DNA of 64,000 bases from Mizuhopecten yessoensis (lineage: Eukaryota): assembly GCF_002113885.1 (NCBI RefSeq), contig NW_018408683.1:552144-616143 (forward strand), given 5' to 3'. Below are positions 19,495-55,109 of the stretch, in pieces. Under the pieces are notes generated by a model. It had not been told where the DNA came from. It ran no database searches and worked only from the letters and a program-made list of their open reading frames with translations. The first letter of the stretch is position 1, and each line of letters begins with the position of its first letter. The translations under genes and the position numbers were made by a program.

Positions 19495-20805
19495 TCATGT
19501 TGCACACTTGGGTACATATTCCCGTATATAAGTCATTAAATCCATGCCTGTATTCTGACAGGTTCCGGAGCCCGTAACAAAGTGTTCCAGGGCTCCCCAC
19601 AGCCTCATCCATCCAAGTTCTTTACAAGTACACTCGATACTATCACCTAACATGTTAAGAACGTAGAGCGAATCTACCTCGCCTATCGCCCTCGGTACAC
19701 CGGCAAGGTTAGTGTTGTCGAGACTGATTGAGTACAACATTGTATTTTGCTTAAATGCAGTCACTGCAATACCTTCCAAAGATGCGTTACTAAGGTCAAG
19801 GTTTCTCAGCAGAAATAATGTGGACAGATCAGAATCTTCTATGTTCGATACATTTGTGTTTTTCATTAATAAGTTTTCCACCAGTGGTATTTGACGTAGA
19901 GCTGTTGGAATGTGATCAAAGTCCGTGCGGTCTAGTGTGATATTTCTCAGCTTAGACTCGGGTGGTATGGTGTCAAGTTCCCACGATTTTATTGGGGAAT
20001 CGGTGACGTAGATGCTCAGTAAATGAGTACATTTTGAAATATTTGGCATAGTTGATAAGCTGCTGTTTTCTATCACCAAAGAAGTTAGTGAGGTGAGGTT
20101 ATGGATATCAAATGACGTCAGAAGATGGTTGTCGATAACGGCCAAATGCTCCAAGTTAGTTAGTACTTGTACGCTGTCAGGCATATCGTTACATTCATTG
20201 TTCTGCAACACAAGTGATTTCATTGTACCTGCCATGTTAAAGAATGCGTCGAACGGCAAAGAGTAGCAAGTTAGACCTACGACTGTAAGGTGAGTTATTG
20301 CATTCAATTGGTCGATGTATTTCGGCCATGGAGAGTTCTCAGAACCTATGGTAAGGTAGCGAAGAGTAGACGCAAATGACATACTAGTTCCCAGGATTAT
20401 GAAGGGGTTGTCTTGCATTGTAAGAATCTCCAGGTTCGTCAGATCATCTATAGCGTTTGGCAGATACCAGAACTGGTTAGACTCCATATGAACGGAAGTG
20501 ACGACATCATTTGAACCGACTAAGCAATCCATGGACAAGGTACTAATCTTGTTGTGTGACATGTTGAGCGACACGACTGTTATGTTTTCGAATGCTCGCT
20601 TTGGAATGGTGGTGAGCTGGTTGTAGCTAATGTCTACCGTCCAACGCTGCTGACCGCCATTAGAGATTCCAGGAACATGGCTTAAACCTTTCCCACTGCA
20701 GTCTATCATACTTCCGGGGATACGACATGTACAAGGAGGAGGGGCTGGACAGGGCTGACCTGGGTCCACAGCAATCGGCGTAATTAGTCCAACTAACGTC
20801 GTTAT
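19495..20805 (-). CDS. Secreted LRR-only protein, paralog A, exon 2 (LRRNT + LRRs + LRRCT); full protein 448 aa
   Basis: CPAPPPCTC..IDCS LRRNT, LxxLxLxxN repeats, IECTCKELGWM..GTC..VPKCAT* LRRCT; acceptor tttacactacag| at 20806; AATAAA on minus at 19432-19437. Confidence 0.9.
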   Translation of the reverse strand: MTTLVGLITPIAVDPGQPCPAPPPCTCRIPGSMIDCSGKGLSHVPGISNGGQQRWTVDISYNQLTTIPKRAFENITVVSLNMSHNKISTLSMDCLVGSNDVVTSVHMESNQFWYLPNAIDDLTNLEILTMQDNPFIILGTSMSFASTLRYLTIGSENSPWPKYIDQLNAITHLTVVGLTCYSLPFDAFFNMAGTMKSLVLQNNECNDMPDSVQVLTNLEHLAVIDNHLLTSFDIHNLTSLTSLVIENSSLSTMPNISKCTHLLSIYVTDSPIKSWELDTIPPESKLRNITLDRTDFDHIPTALRQIPLVENLLMKNTNVSNIEDSDLSTLFLLRNLDLSNASLEGIAVTAFKQNTMLYSISLDNTNLAGVPRAIGEVDSLYVLNMLGDSIECTCKELGWMRLWGALEHFVTGSGTCQNTGMDLMTYIREYVPKCAT

Positions 20806-22456
20806 CTGTAGTGTAAAGCATACATACATGTTTTAAACGTGGCGCTAACTTCGTTTAAGTTTTGCTTCGTAAGTCATGAATATATATCAATAACATTGCA
20901 AACAAAGTTTGACAAAATAAAAGTTTTGTTCGCGGCTTGAAAACTATATACCATATAGTGTTCATTTCGACACAAACGTCAATTGCATAACGAATCCGTG
21001 ATTTTTTAAATTATATTTTGTTGTTTAACGATAGCCAGTCGGAGTCAGCTTTATTATTGATATACCAATAAAAGACCATGACATGTTATTAAACCATCGC
21101 CTACATATCCAATGCAGACCCATGTAATGTTGAAGCCTAACGCCAGTTTACGCAAAACGGGACACTTGTGGAAAAGCAGCTCAAACAATTGGCATGATAT
21201 GCTAAGAAGTATTTTATTTATGCCAACTTCACTATGTGCTACTGGTATGTCAGTTAGTCTGTATATTAGCTTTATTGGCTGCTGATTACGGTTAAACGGA
21301 CAGTTTAAGGTTGGCGACATAACTCGCTTCATTTAAATTTCATAGGATGCTCTTTAATTTGGTATCAATTTCAGACACTTGTTTGTCCAAAGCTTATGCT
21401 GATTTGGAGGAGAAATTCAATCAAACCCTATTTTGTCTCTGCAAAAGTTGAAGTGTGTGTAACGTTCTTTTAATGGTGATCATTTATCCCCCAATATTGG
21501 TCAAAAAACCAAAGTGTTCCCGGATTTAGGGTACAGCTACACAGGTACACGTACCTGTTTAAGAGCTTCCATGACCCTGGTAGTATTTTGCGTTATATCA
21601 GCTTATAATAAAAGATAAATACATGTGGATAATATGTTTTAATGAAAAATGAACTAACATTTCTTGAATTGACATTATGATTTAAAATACATCAATAATT
21701 ACCCAAAATCAGTCCCGTTTTAGATGCACTGATGGTAAATGTCATAGGGTGTGGCCTAAGGGGATTAACCAAAACAAGTATCCGAATGTAGCCTTGACCA
21801 AAAAAGAAGGTCGAACATCAAACTGTCACAGAAGGTGATTTCTAAACATTTTCGTCAAGTTGGTAAGTACAGGGTGAAGAAACGTTCACTTAGCACAACC
21901 AGCAAAGTGATAATATGTGACGTGTCGATGACTAGTTGGGTATGTCATAATGTCTCATGTTTGGTGCCAAAAACCAAATATTCTAAAGCGTAACGTATTA
22001 AGTCTTCTTGATAACGTGTTAAACAACAGATAAAACCAGCGGTCTAGGATATTTCATGAAAACAATTTAAATTGTCTATCATTTACCATGCACTAATTTC
22101 CCTAAATGTATTTTTCGTCTGCGCAATCTTGCAAATATTTACTGACTTTAGACATTTTGATATGCATAAAGCTATAATGTTTTGCATGTGACCCATTCCC
22201 CAATGTATTCAATGTATACCCTATATCACAGATATGTATTGCTATATCAGATATGTATTGCTATATCACAGATATGTATTGCTCTCTGAATGATTTACGG
22301 ACGGGCATACAACAGAAGACGTTATAGAATTCGGCCAAAGACAGCGAGTAGACGAATTGTTCCATTAGATTAATACATTTCCGACCAGAACTGCAATACA
22401 TAATCCAGGTATTGTTTGTTTACGTTACAACACATTAAAACCAGATATATACTTAC

Positions 22457-22492
22457 GATGAATACTACCTGGGTGGTCTTGTAGACGGCCAT
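22457..22492 (-). CDS. Paralog A exon 1 (signal peptide start MAVYKTTQVVFI)
   Basis: ATG at 22492, 12 codons, donor gtaagt; phase 0 joins in frame to ITTLVGLITPIA forming a hydrophobic signal peptide; same 12-codon layout as paralogs C, D, F. Confidence 0.8.
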
Positions 22493-23345: not shown

Positions 23346-23945
23346 ACCTTGAACACCGAGTTAGTCATCTACCAACAGAACCATAGATTACCTCACCACT
23401 GATACCCCCGATGAGACACCTTACCATAAAACTCGCGAGCAGGGACTTACCCACAGAACCACGTATATACTCCTCACCTTGGAACGAGCAGGGACTTAAC
23501 CACAGAACCCCCGTATATACTCCTTACCATTAAACGAGCTGGGACTGAACCACAGAACTCCCGTATATACTCCTTACCACGGAACGAGCAGGGACTTACC
23601 CACAGAACCCCCGTATATCCTCCTTCCCTGGAACGAGCAGGGACTTAACCACAGAAACCCCGTATATACTCCTTCCCTTGGAAAGAGCAGGGACTTAACC
23701 ACAGAACCCCCGTATATACTCCTTACCACAGAACGAGCAGGGACCTACCCACAGAACCCCCGTATATATTCCTTACCATTAAACGAGCTGGGACTGAACC
23801 ACAGAACCCCCGTATATACTCCTTACCTTGGAACGAGTAGGAACTTAACCACAGAACCCCCGTATATACTCCTCACCATGGAACGAGCATGGACTTAACC
23901 ACAGAATCCCCGTATATACTCCTTACCATGGAACGAGCAGGGACT

Positions 23946-24259
23946 TTCAAGTTCAAGATATTTTATTAAGTATTTCAAGGCCAACTAGCCCATAGTACAA
24001 TTTGCACAGTACATAATAACCATATTCACACAATTTTTACATCAAAAACAATTTCTGCAGAGTACCTTATAACGTACAATTTACTAATATATAGCACTGA
24101 CTTCCGATTTAATAATACTAAATTTGAGATGTCACAGATATAATATAATTTGATCTTGATTCAAAAGCTAAATATACAAATTTAGCAACATTTCTTAATT
24201 TATCTTCATTTCCAGTTATTAACATATATTTTGCTTCAACATAGTTTTCCAATGCACCC
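23946..24259 (-). mobile_element. Duplicated 3' end of the RTEX-like LINE (copy 1)
   Basis: Near-identical to 25274-25587. Confidence 0.9.
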
Positions 24260-24809
24260 TACCCACAGAACCCCCGTATATATTCCTTACCATTAAACGA
24301 GCTGGGACTGAACCACAGAACTCCCGTATATACTCCTTACCATGGAACGAGCAGGGACTTACCCACAGAACCCCCGTATATACTCCTTACCATGAAACGA
24401 GCTGGGACTGAACCACAGAACCCCCGTATCTACTCCTTACCATGGAACGAGCAGGGACTTAATCACAGAACCCCCGTATATACTCCTAACCATGGAACGA
24501 GGAGTGACTTAACCACAGAACCCCCGTATATACTCCTTACCATTAAACGAGCTGGGACTGAACCACAGAACCCCCGTATATACTCCTTACCATTAAACGA
24601 GCTGGGACTGAACCACAGAACTCCCGTATATACTCCTTACCATGGAACGAGCAGGGACTTACACACAGAACCCCCGTATATACTCCTTACCATGAAACGA
24701 GCTGGGACTGAACCACAGAACCCCCGTATCTACTCCTTACCATGGAACGAGCAGGGACTTACCCACAGATCCCCCGTATATACTCCTTACCATGGAACGA
24801 GCAGGGACT

Positions 24810-25123
24810 TTCAAGTTCTAGATATTTTATTAAGTATTTCAAGGCCAACTAGCCCATAGTACAATTTGCACAGTACATAATAACCATATTCACACAATTT
24901 TTACATCAAAAACAATTTCTGCAGAGTACCTTATAACGTACAATTTACTAATATATAGCACTGACTTCCGATTTAATAATACTAAATTTGTGCTGTCACA
25001 GATATAATATAATTTGATCTTGATTCAAAAGCTAAATATACAAATTTAGCAACATTTCTTAATTTATCTTCATTTCCAGTTATTAACATATATTTTGCTT
25101 CAACATAGTTTTCCAATGCACCC
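24810..25123 (-). mobile_element. Duplicated 3' end of the RTEX-like LINE (copy 2)
   Basis: Near-identical to 25274-25587, same breakpoint as copy 1. Confidence 0.9.
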
Positions 25124-25273
25124 TACCCACAGAACCCCCGTATATATTCCTTACCATTAAACGAGCTGGGACTGAACCACAGAACTCCCGTATATACTCC
25201 TTACCATGGAACGAGCAGGGACTTAACTACAGAACCCCCGTATATACTCCTTACCATGGAACGAGCAGGGACT

Positions 25274-26449
25274 TTCAAGTTCTAGATATTTTATTAAGTA
25301 TTTCAAGGCCAACTAGCCCATAGTACAATTTGCACAGTACATAATAACCATATTCACACAATTTTTACATCAAAAACAATTTCTGCAGAGTACCTTATAA
25401 CGTACAATTTACTAATATATAGCACTGACTTCCGATTTAATAATACTAAATTTGTGATGTAACAGATATAATATAATTTGATCTTGATTCAAAAGCTAAA
25501 TATACAAATTTAGCAACATTTCTTAATTTATCTTCATTTCCAGTTATTAACATATATTTTGCTTCAACATAGTTTTCCAATGCACCCATTTGTCTTATAT
25601 GTTCATATAATGGACAGTGTAATAAAAAATGATATTCATCTTCAATGAGTCTTGTATTGTTTGTATATAAACAATAATTACATAATCTTTCTTCCCTTGG
25701 AATTTTTAGTTCACGACCTTTTTCAATAAATAATTCATGACTGGATACACGCAGTCTGGTTAGAGCAATTTTATGAGACTTATTTGTAATACAATATAAG
25801 TATCGTTCGGGTTCAATTAACGTTTTGACATCCGAGTAAAAATTCAGTTTATTAGAGTTATTTATTCCAAAATCCCATTCTTGCATACAAGTGTCTTTTA
25901 CTCTTTGGGTAAACAGTCTCATAAAACTATTTATATCGCCAACTTCATGATATATCCATACATAATGAAATCGATATTTGTACAACAGATCTCTAATATT
26001 TGTAGCCCAAGTTACTCTTCCAGCATTGTGTAAATTTACTAACATATCATAGCACCTTCGTGGATATCTAGTGGAGCCCATACTTAAAATATTAAACCAA
26101 TACTTTATACACTTTTTATAATAAACAACACACATGGGATGTCTCCCTAATTCACCCAGAACAGCCAAGTTTGAAGTTGATTGCTTTACTCTCAATAGTC
26201 TTTTAACAAACTTTGTTTGTACAATTTCTATGCCGGGACTGTAACAATAGCCCCATATTTCAGCACCATATGTTATTACAGGAGTTACCATATGATCAAA
26301 AAGATACAATGCCTGCGAACATCCTAAATCATAAGTATTTATGAATCTAAATAAAGTAAACAAAGCTTTCTCTGCTGAAATAACAAGTGCTTCCTTAGTT
26401 TTATTCCACTTAAGAAAACAAGTAAAGTACATACCAAGGTATTTGTACA
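25274..26449 (-). mobile_element. RTEX-like non-LTR retrotransposon, ORF2 C-terminal part and 3' UTR with (cttgaa)-type tail; 5' part lost in the assembly gap
   Basis: Open frame YKYLG...LFDHMVTPVITYGAEIWG...GELGRHP...RLRVSSHELFIEKGR...ERLCNYC...IEDEYHFLLHCPLY (post-RT thumb and C-terminal CCHC finger); AATAAA before tail. Confidence 0.85.
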
Positions 26450-27128
26450 NNNNNNNNNNNNNNNNNNNNNNNNNNNNNNNNNNNNNNNNNNNNNNNNNNN
26501 NNNNNNNNNNNNNNNNNNNNNNNNNNNNNNNNNNNNNNNNNNNNNNNNNNNNNNNNNNNNNNNNNNNNNNNNNNNNNNNNNNNNNNNNNNNNNNNNNNNN
26601 NNNNNNNNNNNNNNNNNNNNNNNNNNNNNNNNNNNNNNNNNNNNNNNNNNNNNNNNNNNNNNNNNNNNNNNNNNNNNNNNNNNNNNNNNNNNNNNNNNNN
26701 NNNNNNNNNNNNNNNNNNNNNNNNNNNNNNNNNNNNNNNNNNNNNNNNNNNNNNNNNNNNNNNNNNNNNNNNNNNNNNNNNNNNNNNNNNNNNNNNNNNN
26801 NNNNNNNNNNNNNNNNNNNNNNNNNNNNNNNNNNNNNNNNNNNNNNNNNNNNNNNNNNNNNNNNNNNNNNNNNNNNNNNNNNNNNNNNNNNNNNNNNNNN
26901 NNNNNNNNNNNNNNNNNNNNNNNNNNNNNNNNNNNNNNNNNNNNNNNNNNNNNNNNNNNNNNNNNNNNNNNNNNNNNNNNNNNNNNNNNNNNNNNNNNNN
27001 NNNNNNNNNNNNNNNNNNNNNNNNNNNNNNNNNNNNNNNNNNNNNNNNNNNNNNNNNNNNNNNNNNNNNNNNNNNNNNNNNNNNNNNNNNNNNNNNNNNN
27101 NNNNNNNNNNNNNNNNNNNNNNNNNNNN
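26450..27128. other. Assembly gap (N run)
   Basis: 679 N bases. Confidence 1.
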
Positions 27129-27977
27129 GAGCAGGGACTTAACCACAGAACCCCCGTATATACTCCTTACCATGGAAAGAGCAGGAACTTACCCACATAA
27201 CCCCCGTATATACTCCTTACCATGGAACGAGCAGGGACTTACCCACAGAACCCCCGTATATACTCCTTACCATGGAAAGAGCAGGAACTTACCCACATAA
27301 CCCCCGTATATTGGAACGAGCAGGGACTTACCCACAGAACCCCCGGATATACTCCTAACCATGGAACGAGCAGGGACTTAACCACAGAACCCCCGTATAT
27401 ACTCCTTACATTGGAAAGAGCAGGGACTTACCCACAGAACCCCCGTATATACTCCTTACCATGGAACGAGCAGGGACTTAACCACAGAACCCCCGTATAT
27501 ACTGCTAACCATGGAACGAGAACGGACTGAACCATGGAACCCCGGAGCAGATACCTAACCACGGAACCCCGATTACACACCTAACCACAGATATCATGAC
27601 AAGACACTTAATAACACAACCCCCGAGCAGTCACCTAACCACTGAACCCCTGATAAGTACTTAACCATGGAACCCCGGAGCAGAATTCAACCACACATAT
27701 CCTGAGAATACACTTAACGACTGATAGCCTGATTAGACAATTAACCATTGAACCCCTGATTGGATACTCAACCATTGAACCCATGATTGTATACTCAACC
27801 ATTGAACCCATGATTGGATACTCAACCATTGAACCCCTGATTGGATATTAAAACCCTGATTGGATACTCAACCACTGAAACCCTGAGAAGACACATAACA
27901 ACGGTATCTCCGAGCAGACACTTGACCACAAATATCCTGAGAAGACAATTTATCACGGAACCCCGAAAAATTACCAT

Positions 27978-28887: not shown

Positions 28888-31800
28888 GGGCCTGTTTCCA
28901 GTAATGTTAATTCTCCATAGGAGCCTGCCCCCGTATAATTTCTTATCTAGCTCAACTACTGTTTTTTTCTTTTCCAAAGTATAATTTTACACCTTTCCGA
29001 CACCCAGATTTCATAATTTCAGTGAAAATGTATTTTTATAAAGTTGTCAATTTCAGCATCAAAGACATAAGTTCGTAAATAAAAGAAGGTTATCTCGAAA
29101 TTGTAATTCGCAACATAGTATAAATTTCTTTTGATAAATATTTCCAAAACATCGTGTTTATTCATAAAACATAAAAAAAAAAATTCTCGGATGAAAATGC
29201 ACTTGCAGAGACACAATTATGAAGAAAAATGCCATAAAATTGCAATTTTCTCCCGTTATATAGTTTTGGATGCAAATTTCCATCAGAAAATCGGATAGAG
29301 CTTTACTTGTTTCATATGTGTACCAAAAATCAGCTAATTCCATGTGGTGGAACGTTCTCATATCGCCGCCTGAATGTGGTTGTAAATTGAAAGAAAAGGG
29401 GAAATGAGTAACAACCTTGTCTGAAACCCTATTATATAGCTTATTATATACAAACTTTTATATTGAATATCAGAGCGGATATTTTCATGACAGTTTTATG
29501 ATGTGTAACGACTAAATAAACAGTATCGATATAAAGATTTACACTGAGGACACCCTGATACATGAATACTGTTCTATCTCAAGTTGTCCTCTTCTGAATT
29601 TTCTGATCGTGTGGCCTTGTACATTTATCCGTATCTTCTTGTCTTTGTCTATACGTTTACGGAATCATTGACTCGACGCTAGCTATTCTTGTCTCACTTT
29701 CCTTGTTTTATTGTCCCATCTCCAAAGCGTTGTGGCTCTGTCAGGGTTGGGACCCTGACTTGTCTCACTTTCTTTGTGCCTGCCGACCACGCCACATCGA
29801 ATAGATAGATTATCCATATGAAATACTTTATTTTGTTCTAAGTAATCAATCAATTCTGCGCTTCTTGGAGGTATTGAATGTGATTTATTATATTGTCTTG
29901 TTATTTTGTGTAATTAGTTGTTCGTTATTTATCACACATTTTCGCATAATTGTACCAAACTACTAAGTATTAGCTGTTTACAGCAATCATCGGTGGCTTG
30001 CTATTTTGTTACTTTATCGACGCTTCATAAACCAATCGTTATTGTTTCAAGATGGAGGGTAAATGTGTTGGAGAAGGGTGTCAAGTATACTTCAAGAAAC
30101 GTAGTGGCAATAAGAACAGAAGTGCACGCAATGTAAATAGTCCACAATATAAATGGCTCCTAGATACGCTGGTGCAACAAGGATTGATGTCAGCAAAGGA
30201 ACAAGCACTTATTTGCCAGAAGTGCTACATGAAGTATCTTCGGAACAAAAATCAGCCTGAACCTGAACCCGAGCAGAACCAGGAAATAGAGGAAGAAGAC
30301 GACTCCCCGTCCCATATCCTGCCGTTGCTGACCCTTCATGATCTTTTGAATGGATCATCTTCACACAAAAAATGCTGTCTCTGTCTTGTTACCTTTGCAA
30401 GAAATGGAACAAAATCATCAGTCTTACCAAAACGTGCAAGACATCACCTGATCTATTCACACAAACTGTGGTGTCCCACCTCATCCCGCGTCTGCTCCAT
30501 TCACCTTATTGGTAACGACTTAGATCCGTCTACAGAGGTTGTCCTTGATGGTAGAGGTTCCTTGGAATCTCAGTTACCATCAAAATCGTCCGAAATCATT
30601 AATGACCTCCTAGAGGTGTCGCACGTCCTTTCACAGAACCAGTCTGCGTTTACAATAAGCTTTTCTTCTCTTGATGACTCGGCATGCATGGCCTGGACAG
30701 GTTGGTCCAAAGATCAGTTCCTCGAAATCCACTCGCACTGTTCCCCATATCTTTCATCTGGTATATATACCAAGACTACACACGATGCTCTATTACTGTT
30801 CTGGGTAAAACTGAAAACCGACATTTCCTGGAGTCAGTGTTCTTCTCTTTTTGGAATTTCCAAGTCAAGTGTGTCCAAAACTTTCCACTCCATAGTACAG
30901 GCATTAGACACATCGATAGTCCCACAATTTCTAGGTCCGGATCACTTGACAAGAGAACAGTTGCTCGGGCACAATACTGTCTTTTCAGAAGCATTTTTTG
31001 GAGATAAAGCCACTGCCATATTAGATGGCACCTATATTTATATCCAGAAAAGCTCCGACCACAAGCTCCAGAGAATGTCCTACTGTGGCCAGAAGAAGAG
31101 AAACTATCTCAAATTCATGAGCATCGCCTTACCAGATGGCTACATTCTGGACACAGTAGGACCATTCACTGGCAGCGAAAATGATGCTACAATTACAAAA
31201 AAAGTCATGGACAAGCTAGTTACTTGGCTACAACCAGACGACAACGTTGTCGTTGACCGAGGTTTTAGAGATGTCCTACCAGTTCTCGAAGCCTCTGGCC
31301 TCAATGCTAGCATGCCGTCATACCTGAAACCCGGTCAAAGTCAACATTCTGACGTCCAAGCAAATCTTGACAGAACTATCACCAAATCGAGGTGGATTGT
31401 GGAATCCTATCATGGTCGTCTGAAACACTGGACGTTCTTCCGAACGCAATTGGTGTCTAACAGCTTTATCAATGTCATCGAGGCTTTGCTTCGAACCGTC
31501 ACAGCCTGTCTGAATGGTATTAGAGGACCGATCTACCAGAGATCTCCAGAGAGAGATGCCAAAGATAGGCTAATGGCTGAACGTATGAAGGACCGTTTGA
31601 CAACACCGAATGGTTTAGCTCAGAGAGTCAAGACAGATCCGGATCTATCTAGACGGGCAAGGTCCGAGTTTGTCAAGATGGATGCATCTTCCGTACTGTT
31701 TCCCCGTCTCGATCTTGATTACTTGAGAACCATTACGTGTGGAACGTATCAGATATCTCTGGCTCCTGGTTACATCGCCGAACATTTAAGTGATGACGGA

Positions 31801-32960
31801 GACTATGAGGTGTGGCTTTACCAGCACTCCCCAGACCTTCTCCGATGTCAAATACATTCTCGACACAAAAGCCAAACGAAATATAACGTTTGGATACGGT
31901 TCACCGTTTCACCCGATGTTGAGGCCCCAATAAAGGACTACTACTGCCAGTGCCCAGTTGGAGAGAGAACGATGGGAATGTGTGCGCACATCTCCAGTAT
32001 CTTGTACTACCTTGGGTATTACAGGACGCTGGAAAACCCTCGACCATTACAACCACAGGTAAAGAAATTCCGACAAAACTTGAAATAGTTTTCCATGCGG
32101 CAACGGAGTGCATATGTCGAAAGTATGTTTGGGGCTCGATATGAAAGATCCCCGTTACCATGTGACTAACCAAACTTATAAATATAGGTATTATACAATC
32201 GCCCGTAGCTATGAACACTCCCGTAAATGCGAAAACCAACCAAAATCATAAGGAACACGTTTTGTTTGTTGTTCTGTCTATTTGTCAGCCAATGTCTTCA
32301 ACCACGGGGACTTGTGAAGTAGCCATCTTGGATTTTTTTTATGAAAAAGTGTTTCTCTCACTTTTTTTCATATCTGTGTACATATTCTCAACATACCGAG
32401 CAAATACTCTCGTTTTTTTGTTAATTATCTAAAGAAAGTCGAAAATCGGCAATTCAACCATAGGCTAATTCAACCCAACATTTGAAAATGTTCCACCACT
32501 TACATTTTGATGATTTTTCCTCTCATCAATAGCATATTACGTACTGTTTAATAGGATAAAAATTGGTTTGCATCCAACGCCCATAAAAGGGTGTATTCTC
32601 TAAAAAACACAGTTTTTGTGTCTAAAATGTTATCATCGAAAATGGCATTTTTGAGATTGTTTCTTCCATAAAACAGCCAAATGGCGCGATGGAAACATGA
32701 TTTTTTGTCACAATCATGCCATGAATGTATTCTTTACGGTGACCATCATTTGATTAGATTTTCATTAATATTTTACATAACATGCACATTTTATCAACAC
32801 TTAGACAGCTTCTGAAAGGTACAACTTTGAGGAGCCATAAAAAACAAACCAAGTGACCTAAATCTTTATACTTTATAGATTTGTGACCACAACGGCATGG
32901 GCAATGCACCACAGGACAGGAAATTTGAATCAGAGAAGGGGCCGTTTTGGAAACCGGCCC
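28888..32960 (+). mobile_element. PHIS-superfamily (ISL2EU/Harbinger-related) DNA transposon, apparently full length (~4.07 kb)
   Basis: Terminal inverted repeats GGGCCTGTTTCCA / TGGAAACCGGCCC (12/13), subterminal inverted pair gtggtggaacgttctca (29344) / tgaaaatgttccaccac (32483), single intact transposase ORF. Confidence 0.75.
30052..32088 (+). CDS. Transposase: N-terminal Cys-rich/THAP-like fingers, HTH (Tnp_4-type), DDE_Tnp_4-type nuclease, C-terminal SWIM zinc finger
   Basis: LLLFWVKLKT...LFGISKSSVSKTF (HTH); ILDGTYIYIQK...SYCGQKKRN...PDGYI...NDA...VVDRGFRD...RWIVESYHGRLK (DDE); YCQCPVGERTMGMCAH (SWIM CxCx9CxH); 678 aa uninterrupted. Confidence 0.92.
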   Translation: MEGKCVGEGCQVYFKKRSGNKNRSARNVNSPQYKWLLDTLVQQGLMSAKEQALICQKCYMKYLRNKNQPEPEPEQNQEIEEEDDSPSHILPLLTLHDLLNGSSSHKKCCLCLVTFARNGTKSSVLPKRARHHLIYSHKLWCPTSSRVCSIHLIGNDLDPSTEVVLDGRGSLESQLPSKSSEIINDLLEVSHVLSQNQSAFTISFSSLDDSACMAWTGWSKDQFLEIHSHCSPYLSSGIYTKTTHDALLLFWVKLKTDISWSQCSSLFGISKSSVSKTFHSIVQALDTSIVPQFLGPDHLTREQLLGHNTVFSEAFFGDKATAILDGTYIYIQKSSDHKLQRMSYCGQKKRNYLKFMSIALPDGYILDTVGPFTGSENDATITKKVMDKLVTWLQPDDNVVVDRGFRDVLPVLEASGLNASMPSYLKPGQSQHSDVQANLDRTITKSRWIVESYHGRLKHWTFFRTQLVSNSFINVIEALLRTVTACLNGIRGPIYQRSPERDAKDRLMAERMKDRLTTPNGLAQRVKTDPDLSRRARSEFVKMDASSVLFPRLDLDYLRTITCGTYQISLAPGYIAEHLSDDGDYEVWLYQHSPDLLRCQIHSRHKSQTKYNVWIRFTVSPDVEAPIKDYYCQCPVGERTMGMCAHISSILYYLGYYRTLENPRPLQPQVKKFRQNLK

Positions 32961-33238
32961 TTTATATAACGAGCTAACTTGTCAAAGGACTGACAATCCC
33001 GTACATATTTTATGTTTATTGTCAGAAAAAAAGGAATACTATCAAAATTATCAAATACGCATGACACTTCTCTAAGGCAATGTTTACTTCCATATGCTTT
33101 AATCTAATGTCACTGACTTGAAAGTCACCTTGTTCGAAGAAATCGGTCACAAATCTGCTATAGATAACAACTTAGTAGCTTTTACAATCCTGAACACACC
33201 TTAGTTTCTCTGACAAATATCCACCGTGAATGTTGACC

Positions 33239-41279: not shown

Positions 41280-41875
41280 CCTGGACGACAGGCTTTCATT
41301 GGCATTAAATCTTTAGTGGACATTTTTCATGACGCATTGGCAGTTCGTACCATGGAAACAACATGAACGCCCATCACTCATATTGACGCTTCCATAATCC
41401 CGGTTAATGATGATTTACAAAACATACGTCTCTCGGATACGTCATCAGATATGATTCCCCCTGCTATTGCCAAAATGAAAAAATACAATATCTGATTATT
41501 GATAACATTAGCATAACGTCAGTGTCCGGATCAGACTTGAAAGGTCTGACCATGATAACTAGTATTGGAATTATTAACGCACCCCTGAATTCCTTTTCTG
41601 AGGACGCTTTAAGAGATACGTGCAACCTTCAGGGCCTCTTTCTGCGTTACACAAACTTGACGACGATATCCAAGGCAATCAATGGACTCAAAATCGCCGT
41701 TATGTCGACTCGGAAGGCTGCTGCCTTGTTTGTATTCTTTGGATTATTTGTTAATGTTCTAGTTTGGGTTGGCTAAAGCATCGGGAGGTTACCTCTTCCC
41801 AGTTGGTGTATGTGATATTTTGCAGTATGTCAGTATAGATGCCAGCTACAGAGCCGAGGTACCAAAATGTACAGA
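41280..41875 (+). pseudogene. Highly decayed LRR paralog remnant (C-terminal half)
   Basis: AFIGIKSL, IPPAIAKMK, SVSGSDLKGLTMITSIGIINAPLNSFSEDALRDTCNLQGLFLRYTNLTTISKAINGLK and RAEVPKC align with the C-terminal repeats and end of paralogs B/C/D. Confidence 0.7.
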
Positions 41876-42810
41876 TGATAGTTCTATTTTATGCTATATT
41901 TTTCTATGTTTTCCTGTCTTAAATAGAAAATTCAACATTACGGTATGTTAATGTTTTGACGTAACATTTTGATAAAGAGTTACCACTACGTCACGTTATG
42001 ATATAAAGTTACACCATCACCAGACATTATGACGAACGTTGGTTCCTGAATGCACAATTTGTAATTGAAGATATGATAATTTAAACACTATTTCGTCATA
42101 AAAACTACCAAACGACCAATACTTTGCTCATTTCATTTCAGGGAGTGCACCATTAATGTTATAAACAGCCGTTTCATTTATATATATATACTATTTCATA
42201 TGTATACAATTTGTCGCGCAGGAAAGAAGGCCAGATGCGTACGGACACAGTGCCAGGAGATCTTCGCTGATATGTAGTGGCAAAATACATATTGAATATT
42301 AGCAAAAAACATCTCCAAAATTAGAAAAACCTGCAGTAGGTAAGAGATAATCAATTGATAATTACATTATCGCTATGGTAGGATTACCAGCAATAATTCC
42401 CCATGTAAGAAAAACAGCATTTTTTTATCAAGAAAACGAATGATAATTCAGGGGCGGAAACAAAAAATTCGGGATGAGATGGAATGGGCAAAAAACGAAA
42501 GAAGGATATTGGCAGACTGGAATAATTCTTGAAGCTCCTATACTCTTGCACCAGATATAAAATTTGTGTTTGAGAAAGACACAAATGGAGTCGATCAATC
42601 AGTAGAAGGGTACAGGAAAAGTCTATCCCGAGGTATACAATAAAGAAATCCAAACTAGGCTGCCAATGTCCTGACTCGAAATAGTACAAAAGGAGACACT
42701 TCAGAACTAGTATTACGTTGTTGTCTCTCTGCAAATGGCTACACCACAAGGAACAAGTTATCAAATAAAAGAAATACTTTTTCGAAATGCTACATCAAGT
42801 CATGGAACTA

Positions 42811-43176: not shown

Positions 43177-43311
43177 CATTTTATTTCTAAATTGACTAAT
43201 TAAAATAGTTAAATCTGTAATACGCTTTCCGTTAATGTAAACATACAGTTCAAGAGATAAGATATTGGAGTTCATAGGAGTCACAACTTAGTTGATAAGC
43301 TCCTTGTAAAG

Positions 43312-43347
43312 ATGGCTATGAATGGAACATATGTCTACATAATAACG
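43312..43347 (+). CDS. LRR paralog C exon 1 (MAMNGTYVYIIT)
   Basis: ATG, 12 codons, donor gtaaga; homologous exons upstream of D and F. Confidence 0.85.
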
Positions 43348-43698: not shown

Positions 43699-45033
43699 CT
43701 GTTGCTGACCAGTGGCAGACAGGGTACCTCTGTCTCTGTACCAGACGACCCCCGTCCTTGCCCGGTAAATGCTCCCTGCCGCTGTGACTTCAGTACAATA
43801 ATGTGTAATAATCTCACTGTGACAGAGATTCCAACGTTCACAAAGGTCAACGCGACATGGAAATGCTGGACACTCAACATGAATTACAATTACAATATTA
43901 AAACGATTCCGTCTGGAGCTTTCAGTAACATTCCCTTCTGTTCCCTTCAAATTGGTCATAATGGCTTTGAAATAATAGAAGATGGGGCACTGACTGGGTC
44001 GGAATCTTATCTTGATTCCGTTTTTATGCAGTTCAATAATTTCAAGGAACTTCCGAATGAAATTGCACGAATGCCGAACATCACAATGCTAAGTATCCAT
44101 GACAACCCGATAAACAATCTCCCAGAAACCATGGCATTCGCCTCAACTCTTCAATTTCTGGATATTGGCTCACCAGCAATGATAACATGGCCGTATTCTA
44201 TTAGATATCTGAAATCTGTTTGGAGCTTATCAATGTATAAGTTGCCGATGTCTGGTCTACCTCTAGATGCATTTGAAGGTTTGGAAGACTCAATTCAGTC
44301 TGTGTCGTTTTCTGCAACAAAATTTAAGAGTATTCCGAAAGCACTAAAAACGCTTCGGAAAATGACTGACCTATCTTTTATGGATGATGTTGAATTAGCA
44401 TGCGAAGGAATACCTGATGACGCGTTCCGTGGCATGGACTCACTTACAGATATTTACATAAGCAACAGCAGCATATCAAGCGTTCCGAATTTGTCGGATA
44501 TCCCAACACTTTCCCATTTATACTTGACTAATTCCCCAGTTACAACATGGGATCCAACTACATTGCCAGATCAGCCACTCCTACAATCAGTAAGTCTCGC
44601 TAACACAGATTTCGATCACATTCCGACCGTTGTACGCCGTATTAAAAGTCTGTATCAGTTAACACTAGACAATACCAAAGTATCCCATATTGGACCAGGT
44701 GACCTGGCAGGTCTTCAGAAACTACAATTCCTTAGTCTGATTCAAACGCCGTTGGTCAATATATCTATGGACGCCTTTAACGAGACATACACTCTGCAAG
44801 GTCTGAATTTGGATTACACAAAACTCTCAGGATTCCCTAGAGCCATTGAACGACTTCCGGCTCTGAGGTTTGTGAGTTTACAAAACGTCACAATTGAATG
44901 TTCATGCGCAGAACTTGGCTGGATGAAGACTTGGATCGGCATTAAACAATTGATGGATGGTGGCGGGCAGTGTCATAACAAGCACATGTATTTGACGGAT
45001 TATATACGCACTGAGGTACCAAAGTGTCCCTGA
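43699..45033 (+). CDS. Secreted LRR-only protein paralog C exon 2; full protein 456 aa
   Basis: Acceptor ttctctgcag|; CPVNAPCRC..IMC LRRNT; LRRs; IECSCAELGWM..GQC..EVPKCP*; AATAAA at 45062. Confidence 0.92.
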   Translation: MLLTSGRQGTSVSVPDDPRPCPVNAPCRCDFSTIMCNNLTVTEIPTFTKVNATWKCWTLNMNYNYNIKTIPSGAFSNIPFCSLQIGHNGFEIIEDGALTGSESYLDSVFMQFNNFKELPNEIARMPNITMLSIHDNPINNLPETMAFASTLQFLDIGSPAMITWPYSIRYLKSVWSLSMYKLPMSGLPLDAFEGLEDSIQSVSFSATKFKSIPKALKTLRKMTDLSFMDDVELACEGIPDDAFRGMDSLTDIYISNSSISSVPNLSDIPTLSHLYLTNSPVTTWDPTTLPDQPLLQSVSLANTDFDHIPTVVRRIKSLYQLTLDNTKVSHIGPGDLAGLQKLQFLSLIQTPLVNISMDAFNETYTLQGLNLDYTKLSGFPRAIERLPALRFVSLQNVTIECSCAELGWMKTWIGIKQLMDGGGQCHNKHMYLTDYIRTEVPKCP

Positions 45034-46782: not shown

Positions 46783-46818
46783 ATGGATATGGACGGAATA
46801 TACGTCTACATAATTATG
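46783..46818 (+). CDS. LRR paralog D exon 1 (MDMDGIYVYIIM)
   Basis: ATG, 12 codons, donor gtaagg; 5' UTR nearly identical to that of C. Confidence 0.85.
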
Positions 46819-47689
46819 GTAAGGTGGTTCTCAAAATATTTTTACGTTTTAAATAGAAAACATTATGACGGGTGTCGCATGTTGTTTGGGATACACAACG
46901 CCAACTGCACAGTTTTGCATCTAGAGTATGATTATATACGCACAAAGAGATAATAAAAACAGCTCGGTCGCATTGTGAATAAGATTTGCTTCCAATGAAA
47001 TGCCTAAAGTTCCAAGTAATAGACTATGGCAACGTTATATAACCATAAATACAAAATATCTTTTGTAAAAAATGTATTGTGCGAGTAAGAAAGTCAATGG
47101 CGTTCAGATATGGTGTCAAGAGATTATCTTGAATTTCTAGTAATAAAATGAATATTGAGAATATTTTTTTTTTAAATTAATAGGTAGTTTTAAAAATACT
47201 GCAAATAGTCTATGTCATTCGACAACAGCTGATTAAAATGGAACTATCGATAATAGGTGAAATCTGTAGCAGTTAATGTAGAAACACATGTTATTCACTA
47301 CATCTTTGTTGCATGACAGTTAAACATTACTGCTCATTTAAGAAGAAATATTGAATTAATATTAAGAGGAAAAATGAAATTCAGATGTGAGCAGACTATT
47401 TGGGAGGAGAGTGCAAAAGGGAAAAAATGACTGAATGAGAGATTACTTGAAGCCCCAATACACTTTTGTAAATACTTACTGTTTTACCACTGTAAATGTG
47501 TTCAACACAAAGATTTGATTTATATTGCAAATTAGAGATTTTTTTAGCAAAACAATATGGACGCCTTTCTAGAGATAAAATGGCTTAATTAAGTGAATTA
47601 CCAAATGAAACATGGAAAGAATTGCTTAAAAATAGGAAAATAATACCTCATAATTTACTTACATTGTAATTTGACATTATATGTTGCAG

Positions 47690-49024
47690 CTGCTGCTAAC
47701 CAATGGCATACAGGGTACCTCTCTCCCTGTACCAGAAGATCCCAGCCCTTGCCCGGTGAGAGCTCCGTGTAGTTGCAATTTCAATAAAGTGTTTTGTAAT
47801 AATCTAACTCAGACAGAGATCCCGACCTTCACCAAGGTCAACGCTACTTGGAAGTGCTGGGAGCTCAACATGAACTACAATTATAATATTAAAACGATTC
47901 CGTCTGGAGCTTTCGATAACATCCCCTTTTGTTCCCTTCAAATTGGTCATAATGGCTTTGAAACTATAAAAGATGGGGCACTGGCCGGATCGGAACCGTA
48001 TCTTGATTCCGTTTTTATGCAGTACAATAATTTTAAGGATCTTCCGAATGAAATTGCGCGAATGCCAAACATCACCATGCTTAGTATCCATGACAACCCA
48101 ATAAATTCCCTTCCGCAGACCATGGCATTCGCTTCAACTCTTGAGTTTCTCGATATTGGCTCATCAGCAATGACAACATGGCCGAATTCAATTGGAACTC
48201 TGAAATCTGTTTCGAGCTTGACAATATATAAATTAACGATGTCTGATCTACCTGTAAATGCATTTGAAGGTTTAGAGGACTCTATTCAGTTGCTGTGGTT
48301 TACTGCAACAAAATTCAAGGGTATTCCGAAAGCATTGAGGAGACTCCGAAAGGTTACTGATCTGGCTTTCGAAGATAATGTTGAATTGACTTCCGAAGGA
48401 ATCACTGATGACGCATTCATTGGCATGGACTCACTAAGAGATATTGACATAAAAAACAGTAGCCTTTCAAGAGTTCCGAATCTGTCCAAAATCCCTGCAA
48501 TTTCCTCTCTATCCCTTACTAACTCACCAATTGCATCTTGGGATTCCAATACATTGCCTGAACAACCAATCATACAATCAGTAAGTCTCACTAACACGGA
48601 TTTAGATCACATTCCGGCCGTTGTGCGACGCATCAGAAGTATTTTTCAATTAACACTTCAAAATACTAAAGTATCCCATATTGGACCGGGTGACCTAGCA
48701 GGTCTTCAGAAGTTACAGTACCTTAGTCTGAGTCAAACTCCTTTGGTTAGTATATCAATGGACGCTTTTAACGATACATCAAGTCTCCAAGGTCTTTATC
48801 TAGATAACACAAAACTCTCAGGATTTCCTAGAGCTATAGAACGACTTCCAGCTCTGAGGTTTGTGAGTTTACAGAATGTCACCATTGAATGTTCATGCGC
48901 AGAGCTTGGCTGGATGAAGACTTGGATCGGTATTAAGCAATTCCTGGGTGGTGATGGGCAGTGCCACAACATACGCATGGAGTTTATAGAATATGTACAC
49001 AATGAGGTACCCAAATGTCCTTGA
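47690..49024 (+). CDS. Secreted LRR-only protein paralog D exon 2; full protein 456 aa
   Basis: Acceptor atatgttgcag|; colinear and same length as C; ends EVPKCP*. Confidence 0.92.
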   Translation: MLLTNGIQGTSLPVPEDPSPCPVRAPCSCNFNKVFCNNLTQTEIPTFTKVNATWKCWELNMNYNYNIKTIPSGAFDNIPFCSLQIGHNGFETIKDGALAGSEPYLDSVFMQYNNFKDLPNEIARMPNITMLSIHDNPINSLPQTMAFASTLEFLDIGSSAMTTWPNSIGTLKSVSSLTIYKLTMSDLPVNAFEGLEDSIQLLWFTATKFKGIPKALRRLRKVTDLAFEDNVELTSEGITDDAFIGMDSLRDIDIKNSSLSRVPNLSKIPAISSLSLTNSPIASWDSNTLPEQPIIQSVSLTNTDLDHIPAVVRRIRSIFQLTLQNTKVSHIGPGDLAGLQKLQYLSLSQTPLVSISMDAFNDTSSLQGLYLDNTKLSGFPRAIERLPALRFVSLQNVTIECSCAELGWMKTWIGIKQFLGGDGQCHNIRMEFIEYVHNEVPKCP

Positions 49025-50092
49025 AAGCTGATTTCACAACGTTTTATTAAACAAGACATAGATGTTTTCTTAATATAATGCCATTATGTTGATTTGAGGT
49101 TTCGAGGGAAAGATTGATTTCAATGGTGTACATGATACATTTATAAGAAGCCAAAATAATGAATTATACTGAAATGAATGAAACAACAGCGTGTACTTCT
49201 TGTTTGTCGGTGACAGTTTATCAAGATGATGATTGTATTGAAATGATATCGTTAAAGTGATCATTTATCTTTGATTATAAACTGTGTGTCTAAAAAAATT
49301 GAAATAGAAAGAAAGACAGACAGAAAGTCAGAAAGCGGGACAGAGACAGACACATGGACAGAAACTTGAAATGCAATTTTAAAAATGCTACAAATAGCAT
49401 TCGTAATTCTTAATAGACTGATTAAAATAGTTCAATCGATAATAAAGTTGTTGTTAGTTTCACGTCGCAGTTAACATACAGCTCAGTTCATAATTACGGT
49501 AAGGTGGTGATCTACATATGTTTTACACTTTGAATAGAAAAACGCATACACTTCAACAAAAGTATCTGGTGGTTGCATTAGATTGTTGTGTGTTCCTTTT
49601 GTTTTTTAATATGTTGTTGTATGTTAATTTGTTTGTTAAAAGATGAATGTGATAGCACCTTTAAATTTGGTAATGGAGACAGTATACCAAAAACGATTTA
49701 CACTGCACCGTACAGCTGTTTGTCAATCTAGGATTTATTGGTGATGCTACCGAACTACCTTTGAAACAGAAGAGGTGCGTAATCCTTTAATCATATAAAT
49801 AACTATATTTATTCCACTTTGTCCTGCCAGTAAGGTCGATAGCGCACAGACATAGCGTAAAAAACAGCAGTATTTTTGTCTGTTAAAGTCAAATTTGTTG
49901 GTTTACCGCCCTTACAAAAGACAAGTTCAAAATAAGACAGATGCATAGCAAGACACTGGTATATTTTCAAGTGGTGCAAAGGTAGGGCGGTCAGGTTTTG
50001 TTTCTCAAAAGTGCCCTTAAAGCTTGAGGAAAAGCGTAGTTCCTTCAGGGGCGAATACATATTTCATATAAAAGGACATTTAATATAAATAG

Positions 50093-50430: not shown

Positions 50431-50964
50431 AAAGATAGTTTAACTACTGCTTACACATGCAGTACATAGGATACGTGTTAACGATAAACCTGTAGGACCA
50501 TTCACTTTAATTTCGGGATATATAACTATTTGTTTGGCGTATAACCAATATCTGTCACCCACATATCCACAGTGAATGCCTCTAAATGGAGAAAACCTGC
50601 AGCAGTTGATATGAGAAACACGTGTTCGTCAGTGCATGTATGTGGCGGCAAAAAGTGAGACAGAAATTTGGCAGGCAGAGAGATTTCCTGTAGCCCTTAT
50701 GCCGTTTTACTGACTTTTTATGAATATATTATCACATAAATGAATTGGTGTTTATTGCATATTAATTTATGTCTAACAAACTCCTCATTTTACTTATAAT
50801 GTCACTAAAATATTGATTTGATAAAGGGAGTTGGTGTATACCGATTCTCAGACACACATAAACAGCATTTGTTAACCAAACAAGAAAATAGGAACTTAGT
50901 TCTCTACATGATTACACGATAAGTTTAAGCATAAAGTTGTAACAAAGTAACATCTTCTTTGAAG

Positions 50965-52233
50965 CTGATGCTGACCAATGACATACAGGGTTTCTTTGTC
51001 TCTGTATCAGATTATCCCCATCCATGTCCGGTGAAGGCTCCGTATAGTTGTGGCTTCAGTACAGTAGTATGTAATAATCTCACTCTGGCAAAGATTCCTA
51101 CCTTCACCAAGGTCAACACCTCATGGAAATGCTGGAATCTCAACATGAATAACAATAACAATATTAAAACGATTCCGTCTGGAGCTTTCAGTAACCTCCC
51201 TTTCTGTTCCCTCCGTATTGGTCATAATGGCTTTGAAATTATTGAGGGTGGGGCACTGACTGGATCGGAACCATACATACGAATGCCGAAGATCACCATG
51301 CTAAGTATCCATGCTTACCCGATAAACAACCTCCCAGAGACCATGGCATTCGCTTCAACCCTTCAATTTCTCGATCTTAGATTACCAGCAATGAACACAT
51401 GGCCGTATTTGATTAGTGCTCTAAAATATGTTTGGAACTTGTCAATTGATAATTTGCAAATGTCCAATTTACCTCTTGATGCATCCGAAGGTTTAGAGGA
51501 CTCAATTCAGTCGGTGTGGTTTTCTACAACGAAATTCAAAGGTATATCGAAAGAGACTCCGAAAAATGACAAGCCTGTCTATAATGGACAAGGTAAAATT
51601 AACATCTAAAGGAATACTTGATGACGCATACATTGGCATGGATTCTCTTACAGAAATTATCCTAAGTGACAGTAGTATATCAAGGGTACCGAATGTGTCC
51701 TATATCCCGGTTCTTTCCTTTCTCTCCTTGACAAATTCACCAGTTTCAACTTGGGATTCAACTACATTGCCAGAACAGACACTCCTGCAATCAGTAAGTC
51801 TCAGCAACACTAATTTCGATCACATTCCGGCCGCTGTGCGTCGTATCAGAAGTCTGTATCAGTTATCACTAGAAAATACCAGTGTCTCATATTGAACTAG
51901 GAGACCTGACAGGGCTTCAAAGGTTACAGGAACTTTGTCTGAGTCAAACTCAATTGACCAACATATCTATGGACGCGTTTAACAAGGCAGTGTCTTCTAG
52001 TTCTGCATGTAGATTTCAGAAAACTCTCAGGATTTCCTAGAGCCAGTGAACGACTCCCTGCTCTGAGGGCCGCGAGTTTACAAAATGTCACAATTGAATG
52101 CTCCTGTGTAGAACTTGGCTGGATGAAGACTTGGATCGGCATTAAACAATTGATGGATGGTGGCGGGCAGTGTCATAACAAGCACATGTATTTGACGGAC
52201 TATTAACGCACTGAGGTACCAAAGTGTCGTTGA
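50965..52233 (+). pseudogene. LRR paralog E pseudogene (exon 2); exon 1 remnant without ATG at ~49485-49499
   Basis: Colinear with C/D; in-frame deletion after GSEPY, frameshift at ~51552, TGA at 51893, TAA at 52204; LRRNT Cys lost (KAPYSC). Confidence 0.9.
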
Positions 52234-52399
52234 AAAATAGTGCTACTGTTGTTGTTCCTCAATCAATAAACATCGGGTTTGAAATAGTCATCGTTTGTTT
52301 TCTTCATTTGATGGAATAGCATCGATGTAAGCAGTTATAAATGGAATCTGAAAGATATGTGAAAATTAATATCAATGATATCACGTATTAAGTAAAGAC

Positions 52400-53090: not shown

Positions 53091-53333
53091 GGTATGTCTA
53101 CCAAGGGAGATACCATGAGTAATAAAGCTGTACTCACACACTAGAAATATAATTAAGCAGTTAATACGATGTCACAACGAGTCTTTGTACTTCTAAATCA
53201 AATTATCAAAATAGAGCAATCGTTGATAAAGTTGCTATACTGTATCCGACAAAGCAAACTCAAACGTCTAGATTAAGGATAATATATTGGAGATCATAGA
53301 AGTCATAACGTTCATTGTAAGCTCCTTGTAAAG

Positions 53334-55109
53334 ATGGCTACGGATGAAATATTTGTCTGCATAATTAAGGTAAGATGGTGAACTACAAACTTTTTGATAC
53401 TTTGAAAAAAATACATTATGACGGTGTCGCATGTGATTTGGGAAACGCTTACACTTCCAAAACATCTGATTACCCTTAATAATTATGGTAAGGTAATGAT
53501 TTACATATGTTTTACAGTATGAAAAGAAAACACAATGACGGATGAACAGAGCAGCTGGGTTCTTCTCCAGATTGTCGTGTACTTCTTCTGTTTCAGTTCA
53601 TGTCATTTGTTTTTCATTGTGTATTGAAGCTAAACTCTATGTCATTTTGTATGTATCAATTGACCAATATGATAATAATAATAATTCAAGGTTCTTATAT
53701 ACCGCTTTAGCACCACCTAGTTCGTAGGTCGTCTCAAAGCGGTTCACAAGTTATTATCCGTGGTTATAGGGCCTTTGCAACAAGTCAATATCTTTCTCAA
53801 ATCCCTTGGGAGCATACAGCCGGTGCTGCCATTTAGGCGCTCACAGATAACATTCAACAATCCAAGCACTGCCCAACCATGTACTCATTTACAGCTGAGT
53901 AGACTAGAACAAGCGGAGGAAAGTATCTTGTTCAAAGATACAACACAGTGCCGTGACGTGATGCAAACCCTCAAAGATGTACTGTGAAGGCTCCGTGTAG
54001 TTGTGTGATGAATTAAGTGCTATGTAATAATCTCAACCTTGCAGAGCTCCCGACCTTCACCAAGGTCAATGTCACTTGAAACTGCTGGAAACTCACCATG
54101 AGTCCTCTTTGTTCCCTTCAAATTGGTCATAGTGGCTTTGAAACAATAGAAGATAGGGCGCTGACTGGATCGGCACCATACTTTTTCTCTGTTTTTATGC
54201 AGTTCAATAACTTAAAGGAACTTCCGAAAGAAATTGCGCGAATGCCAAACCTTACAACGCTTAATATCCATGACAACTAAATAATTTATCTTCCACGGAC
54301 CATGGCAATTGCCTCAACCCTCGAATTTCTCGACATCGGATCACTAGCAATGGCAGTATGGCCGTAATCAACTGGAACTTTAAAAAATGTATATAGCTTG
54401 ACAATATATAAGTTGCCGATGACCGAATAACCTCTTGATGCATTCGAAGGTTTAGAGGACCCAATTCAGTCGATGTGACCCCGGTTTACTGCAACAAAAT
54501 TCAACGGTATTCTGAAAGCACTGAAGAGACTCCGAACAATGACAGGCTTGTCTTTTATGGATAATGTTGAATTAACATCTGAAGGAATAACTGATGACGC
54601 ATTCCTTGGCATGGAATCACTTACAGATATTTACATAAGTAACAGTAGTGTTTCCAGGGTTCCGAACGTGTCCTATATCCCAGCACTTTCCTCTCTTATT
54701 TTGACTAATTCACCAGTTTCAACTTAGGATTCAACTATATTACCAGAACAGCCAATAGTCTAACTAACACGGATTTTGATCACATTCCGGCCACTTTGTG
54801 CCATATTAGAAGTCTGAATCGGTTACCAATGAACTATACCAAAGTGTCAAATATTGGACCTGCTGACCTAGCAGGACTTCAGAAATTACAGGAACTTAAA
54901 CTGAGTCATGGTCCTTTGGCATATATATATATATCCATGGACGCATTTAACGAGACAAATAGTATTCAAAGTTTCAAAATGTCACAATTGAATGTTCTTG
55001 TGCAGAACTTGGTTGGATGAAGACTTGGATTTGGGTGGTGGAGAGTGTCATAACATACACATGGATTTGACGGACTACATATGCAGTGAGCTACCCATGT
55101 GCCCTTTAA
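53334..55109 (+). pseudogene. LRR paralog F pseudogene (exon 1 MATDEIFVCIIK 53334-53369; exon 2 remnant 53984-55109)
   Basis: VKAPCSC, LQIGHSGFETIEDRALTGS, MQFNNLKELPKEIARMP, DNVELTSEGITDDAF, ELPMCP; several stops and deletions; acceptor and exon start missing next to a SINE. Confidence 0.88.
53672..53965 (-). mobile_element. tRNA-derived SINE (same family as 27978-28313), head truncated
   Basis: cctagttcgtaggtcgtctcaaagcggttcacaa.ttattatccgtggttatagg... shared with 28016-28260. Confidence 0.8.

Follow-up and report, generated by a model that had tools for sequence, protein, structure and literature searches.

A 64,000-nt stretch of the genome of the Yesso scallop Mizuhopecten yessoensis (NCBI RefSeq assembly GCF_002113885.1, contig NW_018408683.1, positions 552,144 to 616,143; hereafter the window) carries seven tandem loci for proteins built from leucine-rich repeats (LRRs). 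Genes A, C and D are intact, B is frameshifted, and a remnant at 41.2-41.9 kb, E and F are wrecks (Table 1). An earlier note, made from the letters of the window alone, had located these seven loci and sorted them in the same way. All seven were confirmed by open reading frame (ORF) scanning, tblastn/blastn and searches with intact scallop relatives, and the state of each copy was confirmed by reading and alignment. Specifically, a six-frame scan gave the long LRR reading frames (19495-20829(-), 34911-35942(+), 43702-45033(+), 47681-49024(+) and 50959-51609(+)), six loci were mapped by tblastn and blastn with the window genes, and the seventh, a decayed 3' half, was mapped by searching with its intact relatives from other scallops. 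Pfam searches of the LRR ORFs returned LRR families only, with no match to a seven-transmembrane (7TM) domain.

Structure and expression of the cluster

The intact genes share one plan, which both the sequence and the RefSeq models support as first described: a 12-codon leader exon with a GT donor, a phase-0 intron of 351-1651 bp with an AG acceptor, and a single body exon. The body exon codes for LRRNT, 15 LRRs and LRRCT and stops 1-2 residues past the fourth and last LRRCT cysteine, the intact proteins ending in ..PKCP, ..PKCAT or ..PECP. Across the cluster, leader exons measure 12-16 codons, the longest belonging to gene B. Downstream of the stop codon, an AATAAA occurs 58 nt away in A, 29 nt away in C and 30 nt away in E, within the approximately 60 bp originally given.

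All three intact genes already exist as RefSeq models: A is XP_021371387 (P0016, "LGR4-like", 448 aa, body exon 100% identical), C is XP_021371390 (P0001, LOC110461965, 456 aa, 100%) and D is XP_021371389 (P0003, "chondroadherin-like", 456 aa). Protein analyses were run on these three public models, which correspond to the spliced products. The RefSeq names of family members ("LGR4-like", "chondroadherin-like" and "let-4-like") are misleading. No relevant publications on these genes were found under their accessions or annotated names, and the family has no curated name, which agrees with the initial failure to recognise a named family.

Table 1 Features of the LRR cluster and the assembly gap in the window
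Feature	Position	Strand	Description	Support or remark
Gene A body exon	19495-20805	-	436 codons + stop, LRRNT-LRRs-LRRCT, ends ..PKCAT	acceptor AG 20806-20807
Gene A leader exon	22457-22492	-	12 codons MAVYKTTQVVFI, donor GT, phase-0 intron of 1651 bp	matches P0016 N-terminus
Assembly gap (N run)	26450-27128	.	intergenic between A and B	no LRR homology within 6 kb
Gene B leader exon	33230-33277	+	16 codons MLTMKTLAFTCLLCLL, donor GTGAGT	predicted; peptide unique in window
Gene B body exon (pseudogene)	34514-35942	+	frameshifts near 34575-34597 and at 34908	two-frame tblastn, three-frame reading, tree
X-type remnant	41211-41888	+	decayed 3' half (last LRRs + LRRCT, ..EVPKC + short tail), several stops and frameshifts	
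Gene C leader exon	43312-43347	+	12 codons	joint 43347/43699 (runs X1, X4 and X10)
Gene C body exon	43699-45033	+	444 codons + stop, ends ..PKCP	AATAAA 29 nt past stop
Gene D leader exon	46783-46818	+	12 codons	joint 46818/47690 in runs X1 and X4
Gene D body exon	47690-49024	+	stop 1-2 residues past last Cys	= P0003
Pseudogene E leader-exon/promoter region	49362-49541	+	decayed	blastn 71-88% to C and D leader regions
Pseudogene E body	50965-52235	+	54-nt in-frame deletion; frameshifting deletions of 8, 2 and 2 nt; one in-frame stop	82% identical to C
Pseudogene F leader-exon/promoter region	53278-53477	+		83% identical to that of C
Pseudogene F body	53984-55113	+	16 indels, 6 in-frame stops	80% identical to C

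Contigs from three runs of three studies, guessed rather than recorded to be RNA, were aligned with C and D. They contained GT..AG joints exactly at the predicted junctions, 43347/43699 in three runs (C) and 46818/47690 in two (D). Only the exons of C and D were covered, and introns and most of the intergenic DNA had zero depth. The longest C contig ended at 45069, 36 nt past the stop codon and just beyond the AATAAA, and none of the contigs of the three runs on C and D contained a joint to a downstream exon, in line with the claim that these genes are not spliced onto exons for a transmembrane (TM) helix or a TIR domain. Each gene differed from the reference by at most 3 bases (per 1.3 kb), with no hypervariation or somatic change visible. 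Five of the six differences in C and D altered an amino acid (43780, 44630, 47826, 48323 and 48356, the exception being 44886), too few to interpret. For gene A, the predicted junction 22457/20805 agrees with the RefSeq model.

The initial description of the intact proteins stands: they consist of LRRs alone behind a signal-like leader and lack a stalk, a TM helix, a TIR domain and a glycosylphosphatidylinositol (GPI) tail. Outside the leader, no hydrophobic window was found in them. Hydrophobic leaders are kept in the orthologs, and the AlphaFold (AF2) model places a low-confidence N-terminal helix there. Mature proteins are acidic, approximately 47 kDa, and carry 7-9 N-glycosylation sequons. 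The model, computed with the family alignment (pLDDT 89.5), is a horseshoe with an LRRNT hairpin, 15 LRR strands and an LRRCT, and the cap cysteine patterns, Cx5CxCx6C and CxC...C...C, are invariant across the alignment. In having LRRs enclosed by cysteine-bearing LRRNT and LRRCT caps and no further domain, the proteins agree with the extracellular LRR-only class. The best sequence and fold matches were the ectodomains of LGR4/5, Lingo-1, LRIG1 and Toll, at approximately 20% identity, and the predicted fold is that of a generic capped LRR horseshoe. A specific structural relative was also sought, and Foldseek and PDB profile searches gave generic LRR ectodomains only.

Among the broken copies, gene B lacks 4 nt relative to its orthologs at 34908 and has at least two frameshifts in all. 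Its orthologs in Pecten maximus and Ylistrum balloti are intact B-type genes (72-75% amino acid identity), and the X-type remnant matched intact X-type genes of the same two species at 48-65% identity (tblastn, E 6e-45). A 90-bp tract of E (52110-52199) is identical to C on a background of approximately 80% identity. This identity had been pointed out before, held when tested, and is due to germline gene conversion. The cluster evolves by tandem duplication, by formation and decay of pseudogenes (B, the X-type remnant, E and F) and by occasional gene conversion. Its initial description as a birth-and-death cluster is thus borne out by the tandem copies, the pseudogenes and the C-E conversion tract.

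Family range and selection

In a maximum-likelihood tree, the scallop genes fell into four subtypes (A, B, X and C-type), all of them supported at 100%, and C-type duplications were both shared between species and species-specific. Argopecten irradians has five tandem C-type genes within 20 kb, with a sixth elsewhere among the search results, and an A-type gene approximately 13 kb from the C-type array on one chromosome. In Ylistrum and Pecten, the C, B and X types are adjacent. Additionally, an IBR-PARP gene adjoins the cluster in Ylistrum balloti (L004 19852-21554), and a PARP-domain gene flanks the cluster of the window at 59640-60440(-). The four subtypes predate the scallop radiation, the cluster is syntenic across scallops, and its neighbourhood, marked by PARP, is conserved. 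The own leaders of C and D are likewise conserved in other scallops.

Full-length collinear relatives of 437-477 aa were found in Crassostrea virginica, Saccostrea cucullata, Pinctada imbricata, Ruditapes philippinarum, Mya arenaria, Mactra antiquata and Dreissena polymorpha, and the named family members are all bivalves. The wide profile search was swamped by giant multi-LRR proteins, and the informative hits were single-stretch matches of approximately 450 aa. In Dreissena, the gene is built in the same way, from a 12-codon leader exon, a phase-0 intron and one body exon. In the relatives that were read, 0-3 residues follow the last cysteine of LRRCT, except for a few with short tails (up to 10 residues). 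Because collinear relatives occur across bivalves and the Dreissena gene has the same structure, the family is old and bivalve-wide, not scallop-specific. Gene structure, the stop at the LRRCT cysteine and the four subtypes seen in scallops would together define the family and so correct its annotation. Between the signal peptide and LRRNT, many members from clams and oysters carry a short F-L-(F/L)-D-like motif (P0143, P0210, P0216, P0232, P0235 and P0072), at the place where the scallop C-type has V-P-D-D-P.

Selection was analysed in nine C-type genes from four species by pairwise Nei-Gojobori estimates, by a partitioned GY94 model in IQ-TREE and by our own implementation of the M0, M1a and M2a models. 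Pairwise omega (the ratio of nonsynonymous to synonymous rates) was 0.13-0.20, and synonymous divergence (dS) between C and D was 0.59, which marks them as old paralogs. Under GY94, overall omega was 0.18; by partition, it was 0.33 for the concave face (75 codons), 0.15 for the remaining LRR codons and 0.17 for the caps. Our M0 estimate (0.181) equalled the IQ-TREE value. When the concave face was split, omega was 0.15 in LRR1-6 versus 0.47 in LRR7-15, with 0.18 at other polar sites. M1a placed 17% of sites at omega = 1, and M2a found no class above 1 (likelihood-ratio test of M1a against M2a, 0). Positive selection was rejected, as Nei-Gojobori, GY94 and M0/M1a/M2a all gave no omega above 1.

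Neutral-class sites accounted for 25 of the 45 concave positions in LRR7-15 versus 2 of 30 in LRR1-6, and neutral-class concave positions were enriched 4.7-fold over other LRR positions (p = 1e-6). Concave-face positions had an entropy of 1.14 bits versus 0.65 bits for the rest (p = 5e-8), and replacement changes between paralogs were enriched on the concave face (odds ratio 2.7-3.3); the concave-face differences reported from the sequence held when tested. Purifying selection acts on the intact genes. The concave face of LRR1-6 is constrained, whereas over half of the exposed positions on that of LRR7-15 are near-neutral, and entropy shows the same contrast.

These results change the picture drawn by the earlier note, which had read the cluster as a candidate lineage-specific, fast-turnover family of variable receptors. 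The family and its 12-codon leader exon were found across Bivalvia. Fast turnover does not fit the C-D dS, the age of the subtypes or the retained PARP synteny, and variability fits neither the overall omega and the M1a/M2a test nor the few base differences of the contigs. The family is neither lineage-restricted nor fast-evolving, and nothing indicates diversifying selection, hypervariability or somatic change.

Function and comparison with known LRR proteins

On balance, we favour the reading that the window holds the Yesso scallop's version of a conserved tandem cluster, and that the bivalve-wide family behind it consists of LRR-only proteins of approximately 450 aa which are secreted and glycosylated and would serve as soluble modules for binding or as adaptors. 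The two halves of the concave face differ in a way that suggests common docking on LRR1-6 and paralog-specific contacts on LRR7-15. The N-terminal half would dock a conserved common partner, and the contacts made by the C-terminal half would differ between paralogs. By analogy with the published scallop CfLRRop proteins and shrimp CD14L (PMC5877582, PMC10178686), humoral recognition is the leading candidate role, put forward tentatively, and the proteins might serve as pattern-recognition proteins or as co-receptors for a membrane receptor. Lacking adaptive immunity, bivalves depend on recognition proteins from large, expanded families. Secreted LRR-only proteins conserved from scallops to clams are reasonable candidates for soluble recognition or co-receptor proteins, and the contrast between LRR1-6 and LRR7-15 points to specific sites that binding studies on farmed scallops and oysters could address.

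Several observations weigh against this reading. A housekeeping role outside the cell would account equally well for old paralogs under purifying selection and for the 1:1 orthology seen in the A, B and X types. The predicted signal peptide of C is weakly hydrophobic. The selection tests are weakened by synonymous sites near saturation (tree length 5.3 per codon) and by gene conversion among these paralogs. Furthermore, the RNA nature of the three runs that bear the joints is a guess and not a record, and neither C nor D had any reads in one raw RNA run, so expression of these two genes is not ubiquitous.

A serious rival, although one we consider somewhat unlikely, is that these are extracellular matrix, adhesion or signalling-modulator proteins with a conserved developmental or structural, non-immune role, resembling small leucine-rich proteoglycans or a soluble decoy of the LGR ectodomain type. 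Purifying selection, the deep conservation of the family and of its gene structure, the strongly conserved LRR1-6 face and the non-ubiquitous expression all agree with such a role, as do the LGR4/5 ectodomains as best sequence and fold matches; however, identity to LGR and chondroadherin is just approximately 20% and generic. Many tandem copies with frequent loss would also be unusual for a core developmental ligand-binder, and the near-neutral LRR7-15 face is unlike a single conserved ligand site. By contrast, the proposal that the cluster is a lineage-specific, fast-turnover, variable immune or allorecognition family under diversifying selection, with pseudogenes perhaps serving as donor cassettes, is very unlikely to be correct. 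The tandem array with pseudogenes, the 90 identical bases of the C-E conversion tract and the more variable, replacement-enriched concave face are what this proposal would predict. They are outweighed by the low omega without any class above 1, the C-D dS, subtypes and synteny conserved across scallops in a family that spans bivalves, contigs of three studies that are nearly invariant, and germline genes that are complete, unlike those of the agnathan loci discussed below. The cluster is not a new kind of variable receptor.

In favour of the preferred reading, recognition proteins of the LRR-only kind are known from scallop and shrimp (PMC5877582, PMC10178686). The "LRR-only" proteins CfLRRop-1 to -7 of the scallop Chlamys farreri were reported to bind lipopolysaccharide, peptidoglycan, glucan and poly I:C and to induce immune effectors (PMC5877582; also cited in this context, PMC10178686 and PMC12551460). 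They resemble the window proteins, by description only, as scallop proteins of LRRs alone for which the same kind of role is proposed, but they have 1-4 detected LRR domains according to a review (PMC5877582), compared with 15 LRRs here. No CfLRRop name appeared among the database matches to the window proteins and their relatives. Shrimp LvCD14L (310 aa, 7 LRRs) and Manduca leureptin are secreted proteins of the LRRNT-LRR type, for which binding of microbial patterns and action via Toll receptors have been proposed (PMC10178686). Theirs is the mechanism class we favour; however, they are shorter and come from another phylum, and the likeness is one of type. The mosquito LRIM1/APL1C proteins are also secreted, encoded in clusters and, in their case, have a humoral immune role, but their C-terminal coiled coil and double-cysteine heterodimer motif are missing from the window proteins, which end at LRRCT.

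The ectodomains of LGR4/5/6 share LRRNT, approximately 15-17 LRRs, a C-terminal cap and a similar total size with the window proteins. However, identity is approximately 21% and the TM-score 0.43-0.58, and the hinge and rhodopsin-type 7TM domain are absent, both the protein and the C contig ending at LRRCT. The TM helix and TIR domain of Toll-like receptors were not found either, with the stop 1-2 residues past the last cysteine and no hydrophobic window. Small leucine-rich proteoglycans have 10-12 LRRs, a class-specific N-terminal cysteine cluster and a C-terminal ear-repeat cap. The proteins here differ from chondroadherin in this respect, having 15 LRRs and a four-cysteine LRRCT, and matched it weakly (E 8e-12, versus 8e-26 for LGR4). 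Variable lymphocyte receptors (VLRs) of agnathans likewise use a capped LRR solenoid alone, with variable residues on the concave face. In contrast to VLRs, with their incomplete germline gene and somatic assembly of cassettes, the window ORFs are complete and the contigs match the germline. Moreover, VLRs have 4-9 LRRs and a Thr/Pro-rich stalk with a GPI or hydrophobic tail, whereas 15 LRRs are present here and 0-2 residues follow the last cysteine.

A side lead concerns the leader of gene B. Two public models, OWF41785 (P0060, C) and XP_021371388 (P0062, D isoform X1), begin with the B leader peptide, which is encoded only at 33230-33277. This exon lies upstream of both body exons, at a distance of 10.4 kb from that of C and 14.4 kb from that of D. 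The two models thus imply introns of these lengths that pass over other genes, and the B leader yields a much stronger predicted signal peptide than the own leaders of C and D. The cluster could then be one transcription unit in which the dead B leader is alternatively spliced onto the C and D bodies, with one promoter and one signal exon for several terminal exons. That the two models come from different pipelines and start with the same 16-codon peptide speaks for this arrangement, which we nevertheless regard as unlikely: the contigs show each gene's own leader only, the own leaders are conserved in other scallops, and the public models may be ab initio. If these models do reflect real RNA, the promoter and signal exon of a dead gene would feed its downstream paralogs. 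A bivalve-specific humoral recognition system that combined both features, with docking on LRR1-6, ligand choice on LRR7-15, and the dead B leader spliced onto the C and D bodies so that one promoter served several receptors, is a speculative prospect and very improbable.

Surrounding DNA

The assembly gap is flanked on both sides by a 50-bp satellite, at 23436-25274 (approximately 27 copies) and at 27129-27543 (approximately 8.5 copies). Because the gap is intergenic and lies in satellite and transposon DNA outside every gene, its continuity bears only on the distance between A and B. The linkage of an A-type gene to the C-type array was seen independently in Argopecten irradians. ORFs that seem to cross the gap are artefacts of translated N. 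The ORF at 25446-26447(-), to the left of the gap, had no Pfam match, and translation of the satellite gives spurious repeat ORFs, for example, 24392-24859.

Mobile elements also lie between the LRR loci. An intact 678-aa ORF between A and B (30052-32088(+)) contains HTH_Tnp_4 and DDE_Tnp_4 and is a PIF/Harbinger-type transposase, possibly an active one. A reverse-transcriptase fragment (RVT_1) is located at 36889-37599(+), between B and the X-type remnant. The segment 45787-46383, between C and D, had high depth in all four runs with many loose ends, and it looks like a piece of a dispersed transcribed repeat, not of C or D. A single N at 43608 falls within a poly-G run of the gene C intron and leaves the coding sequence untouched. 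In addition, a GC-rich island at 12000-16000 (47-52% versus approximately 35%) contains several ORFs of 120-330 aa without a Pfam match.

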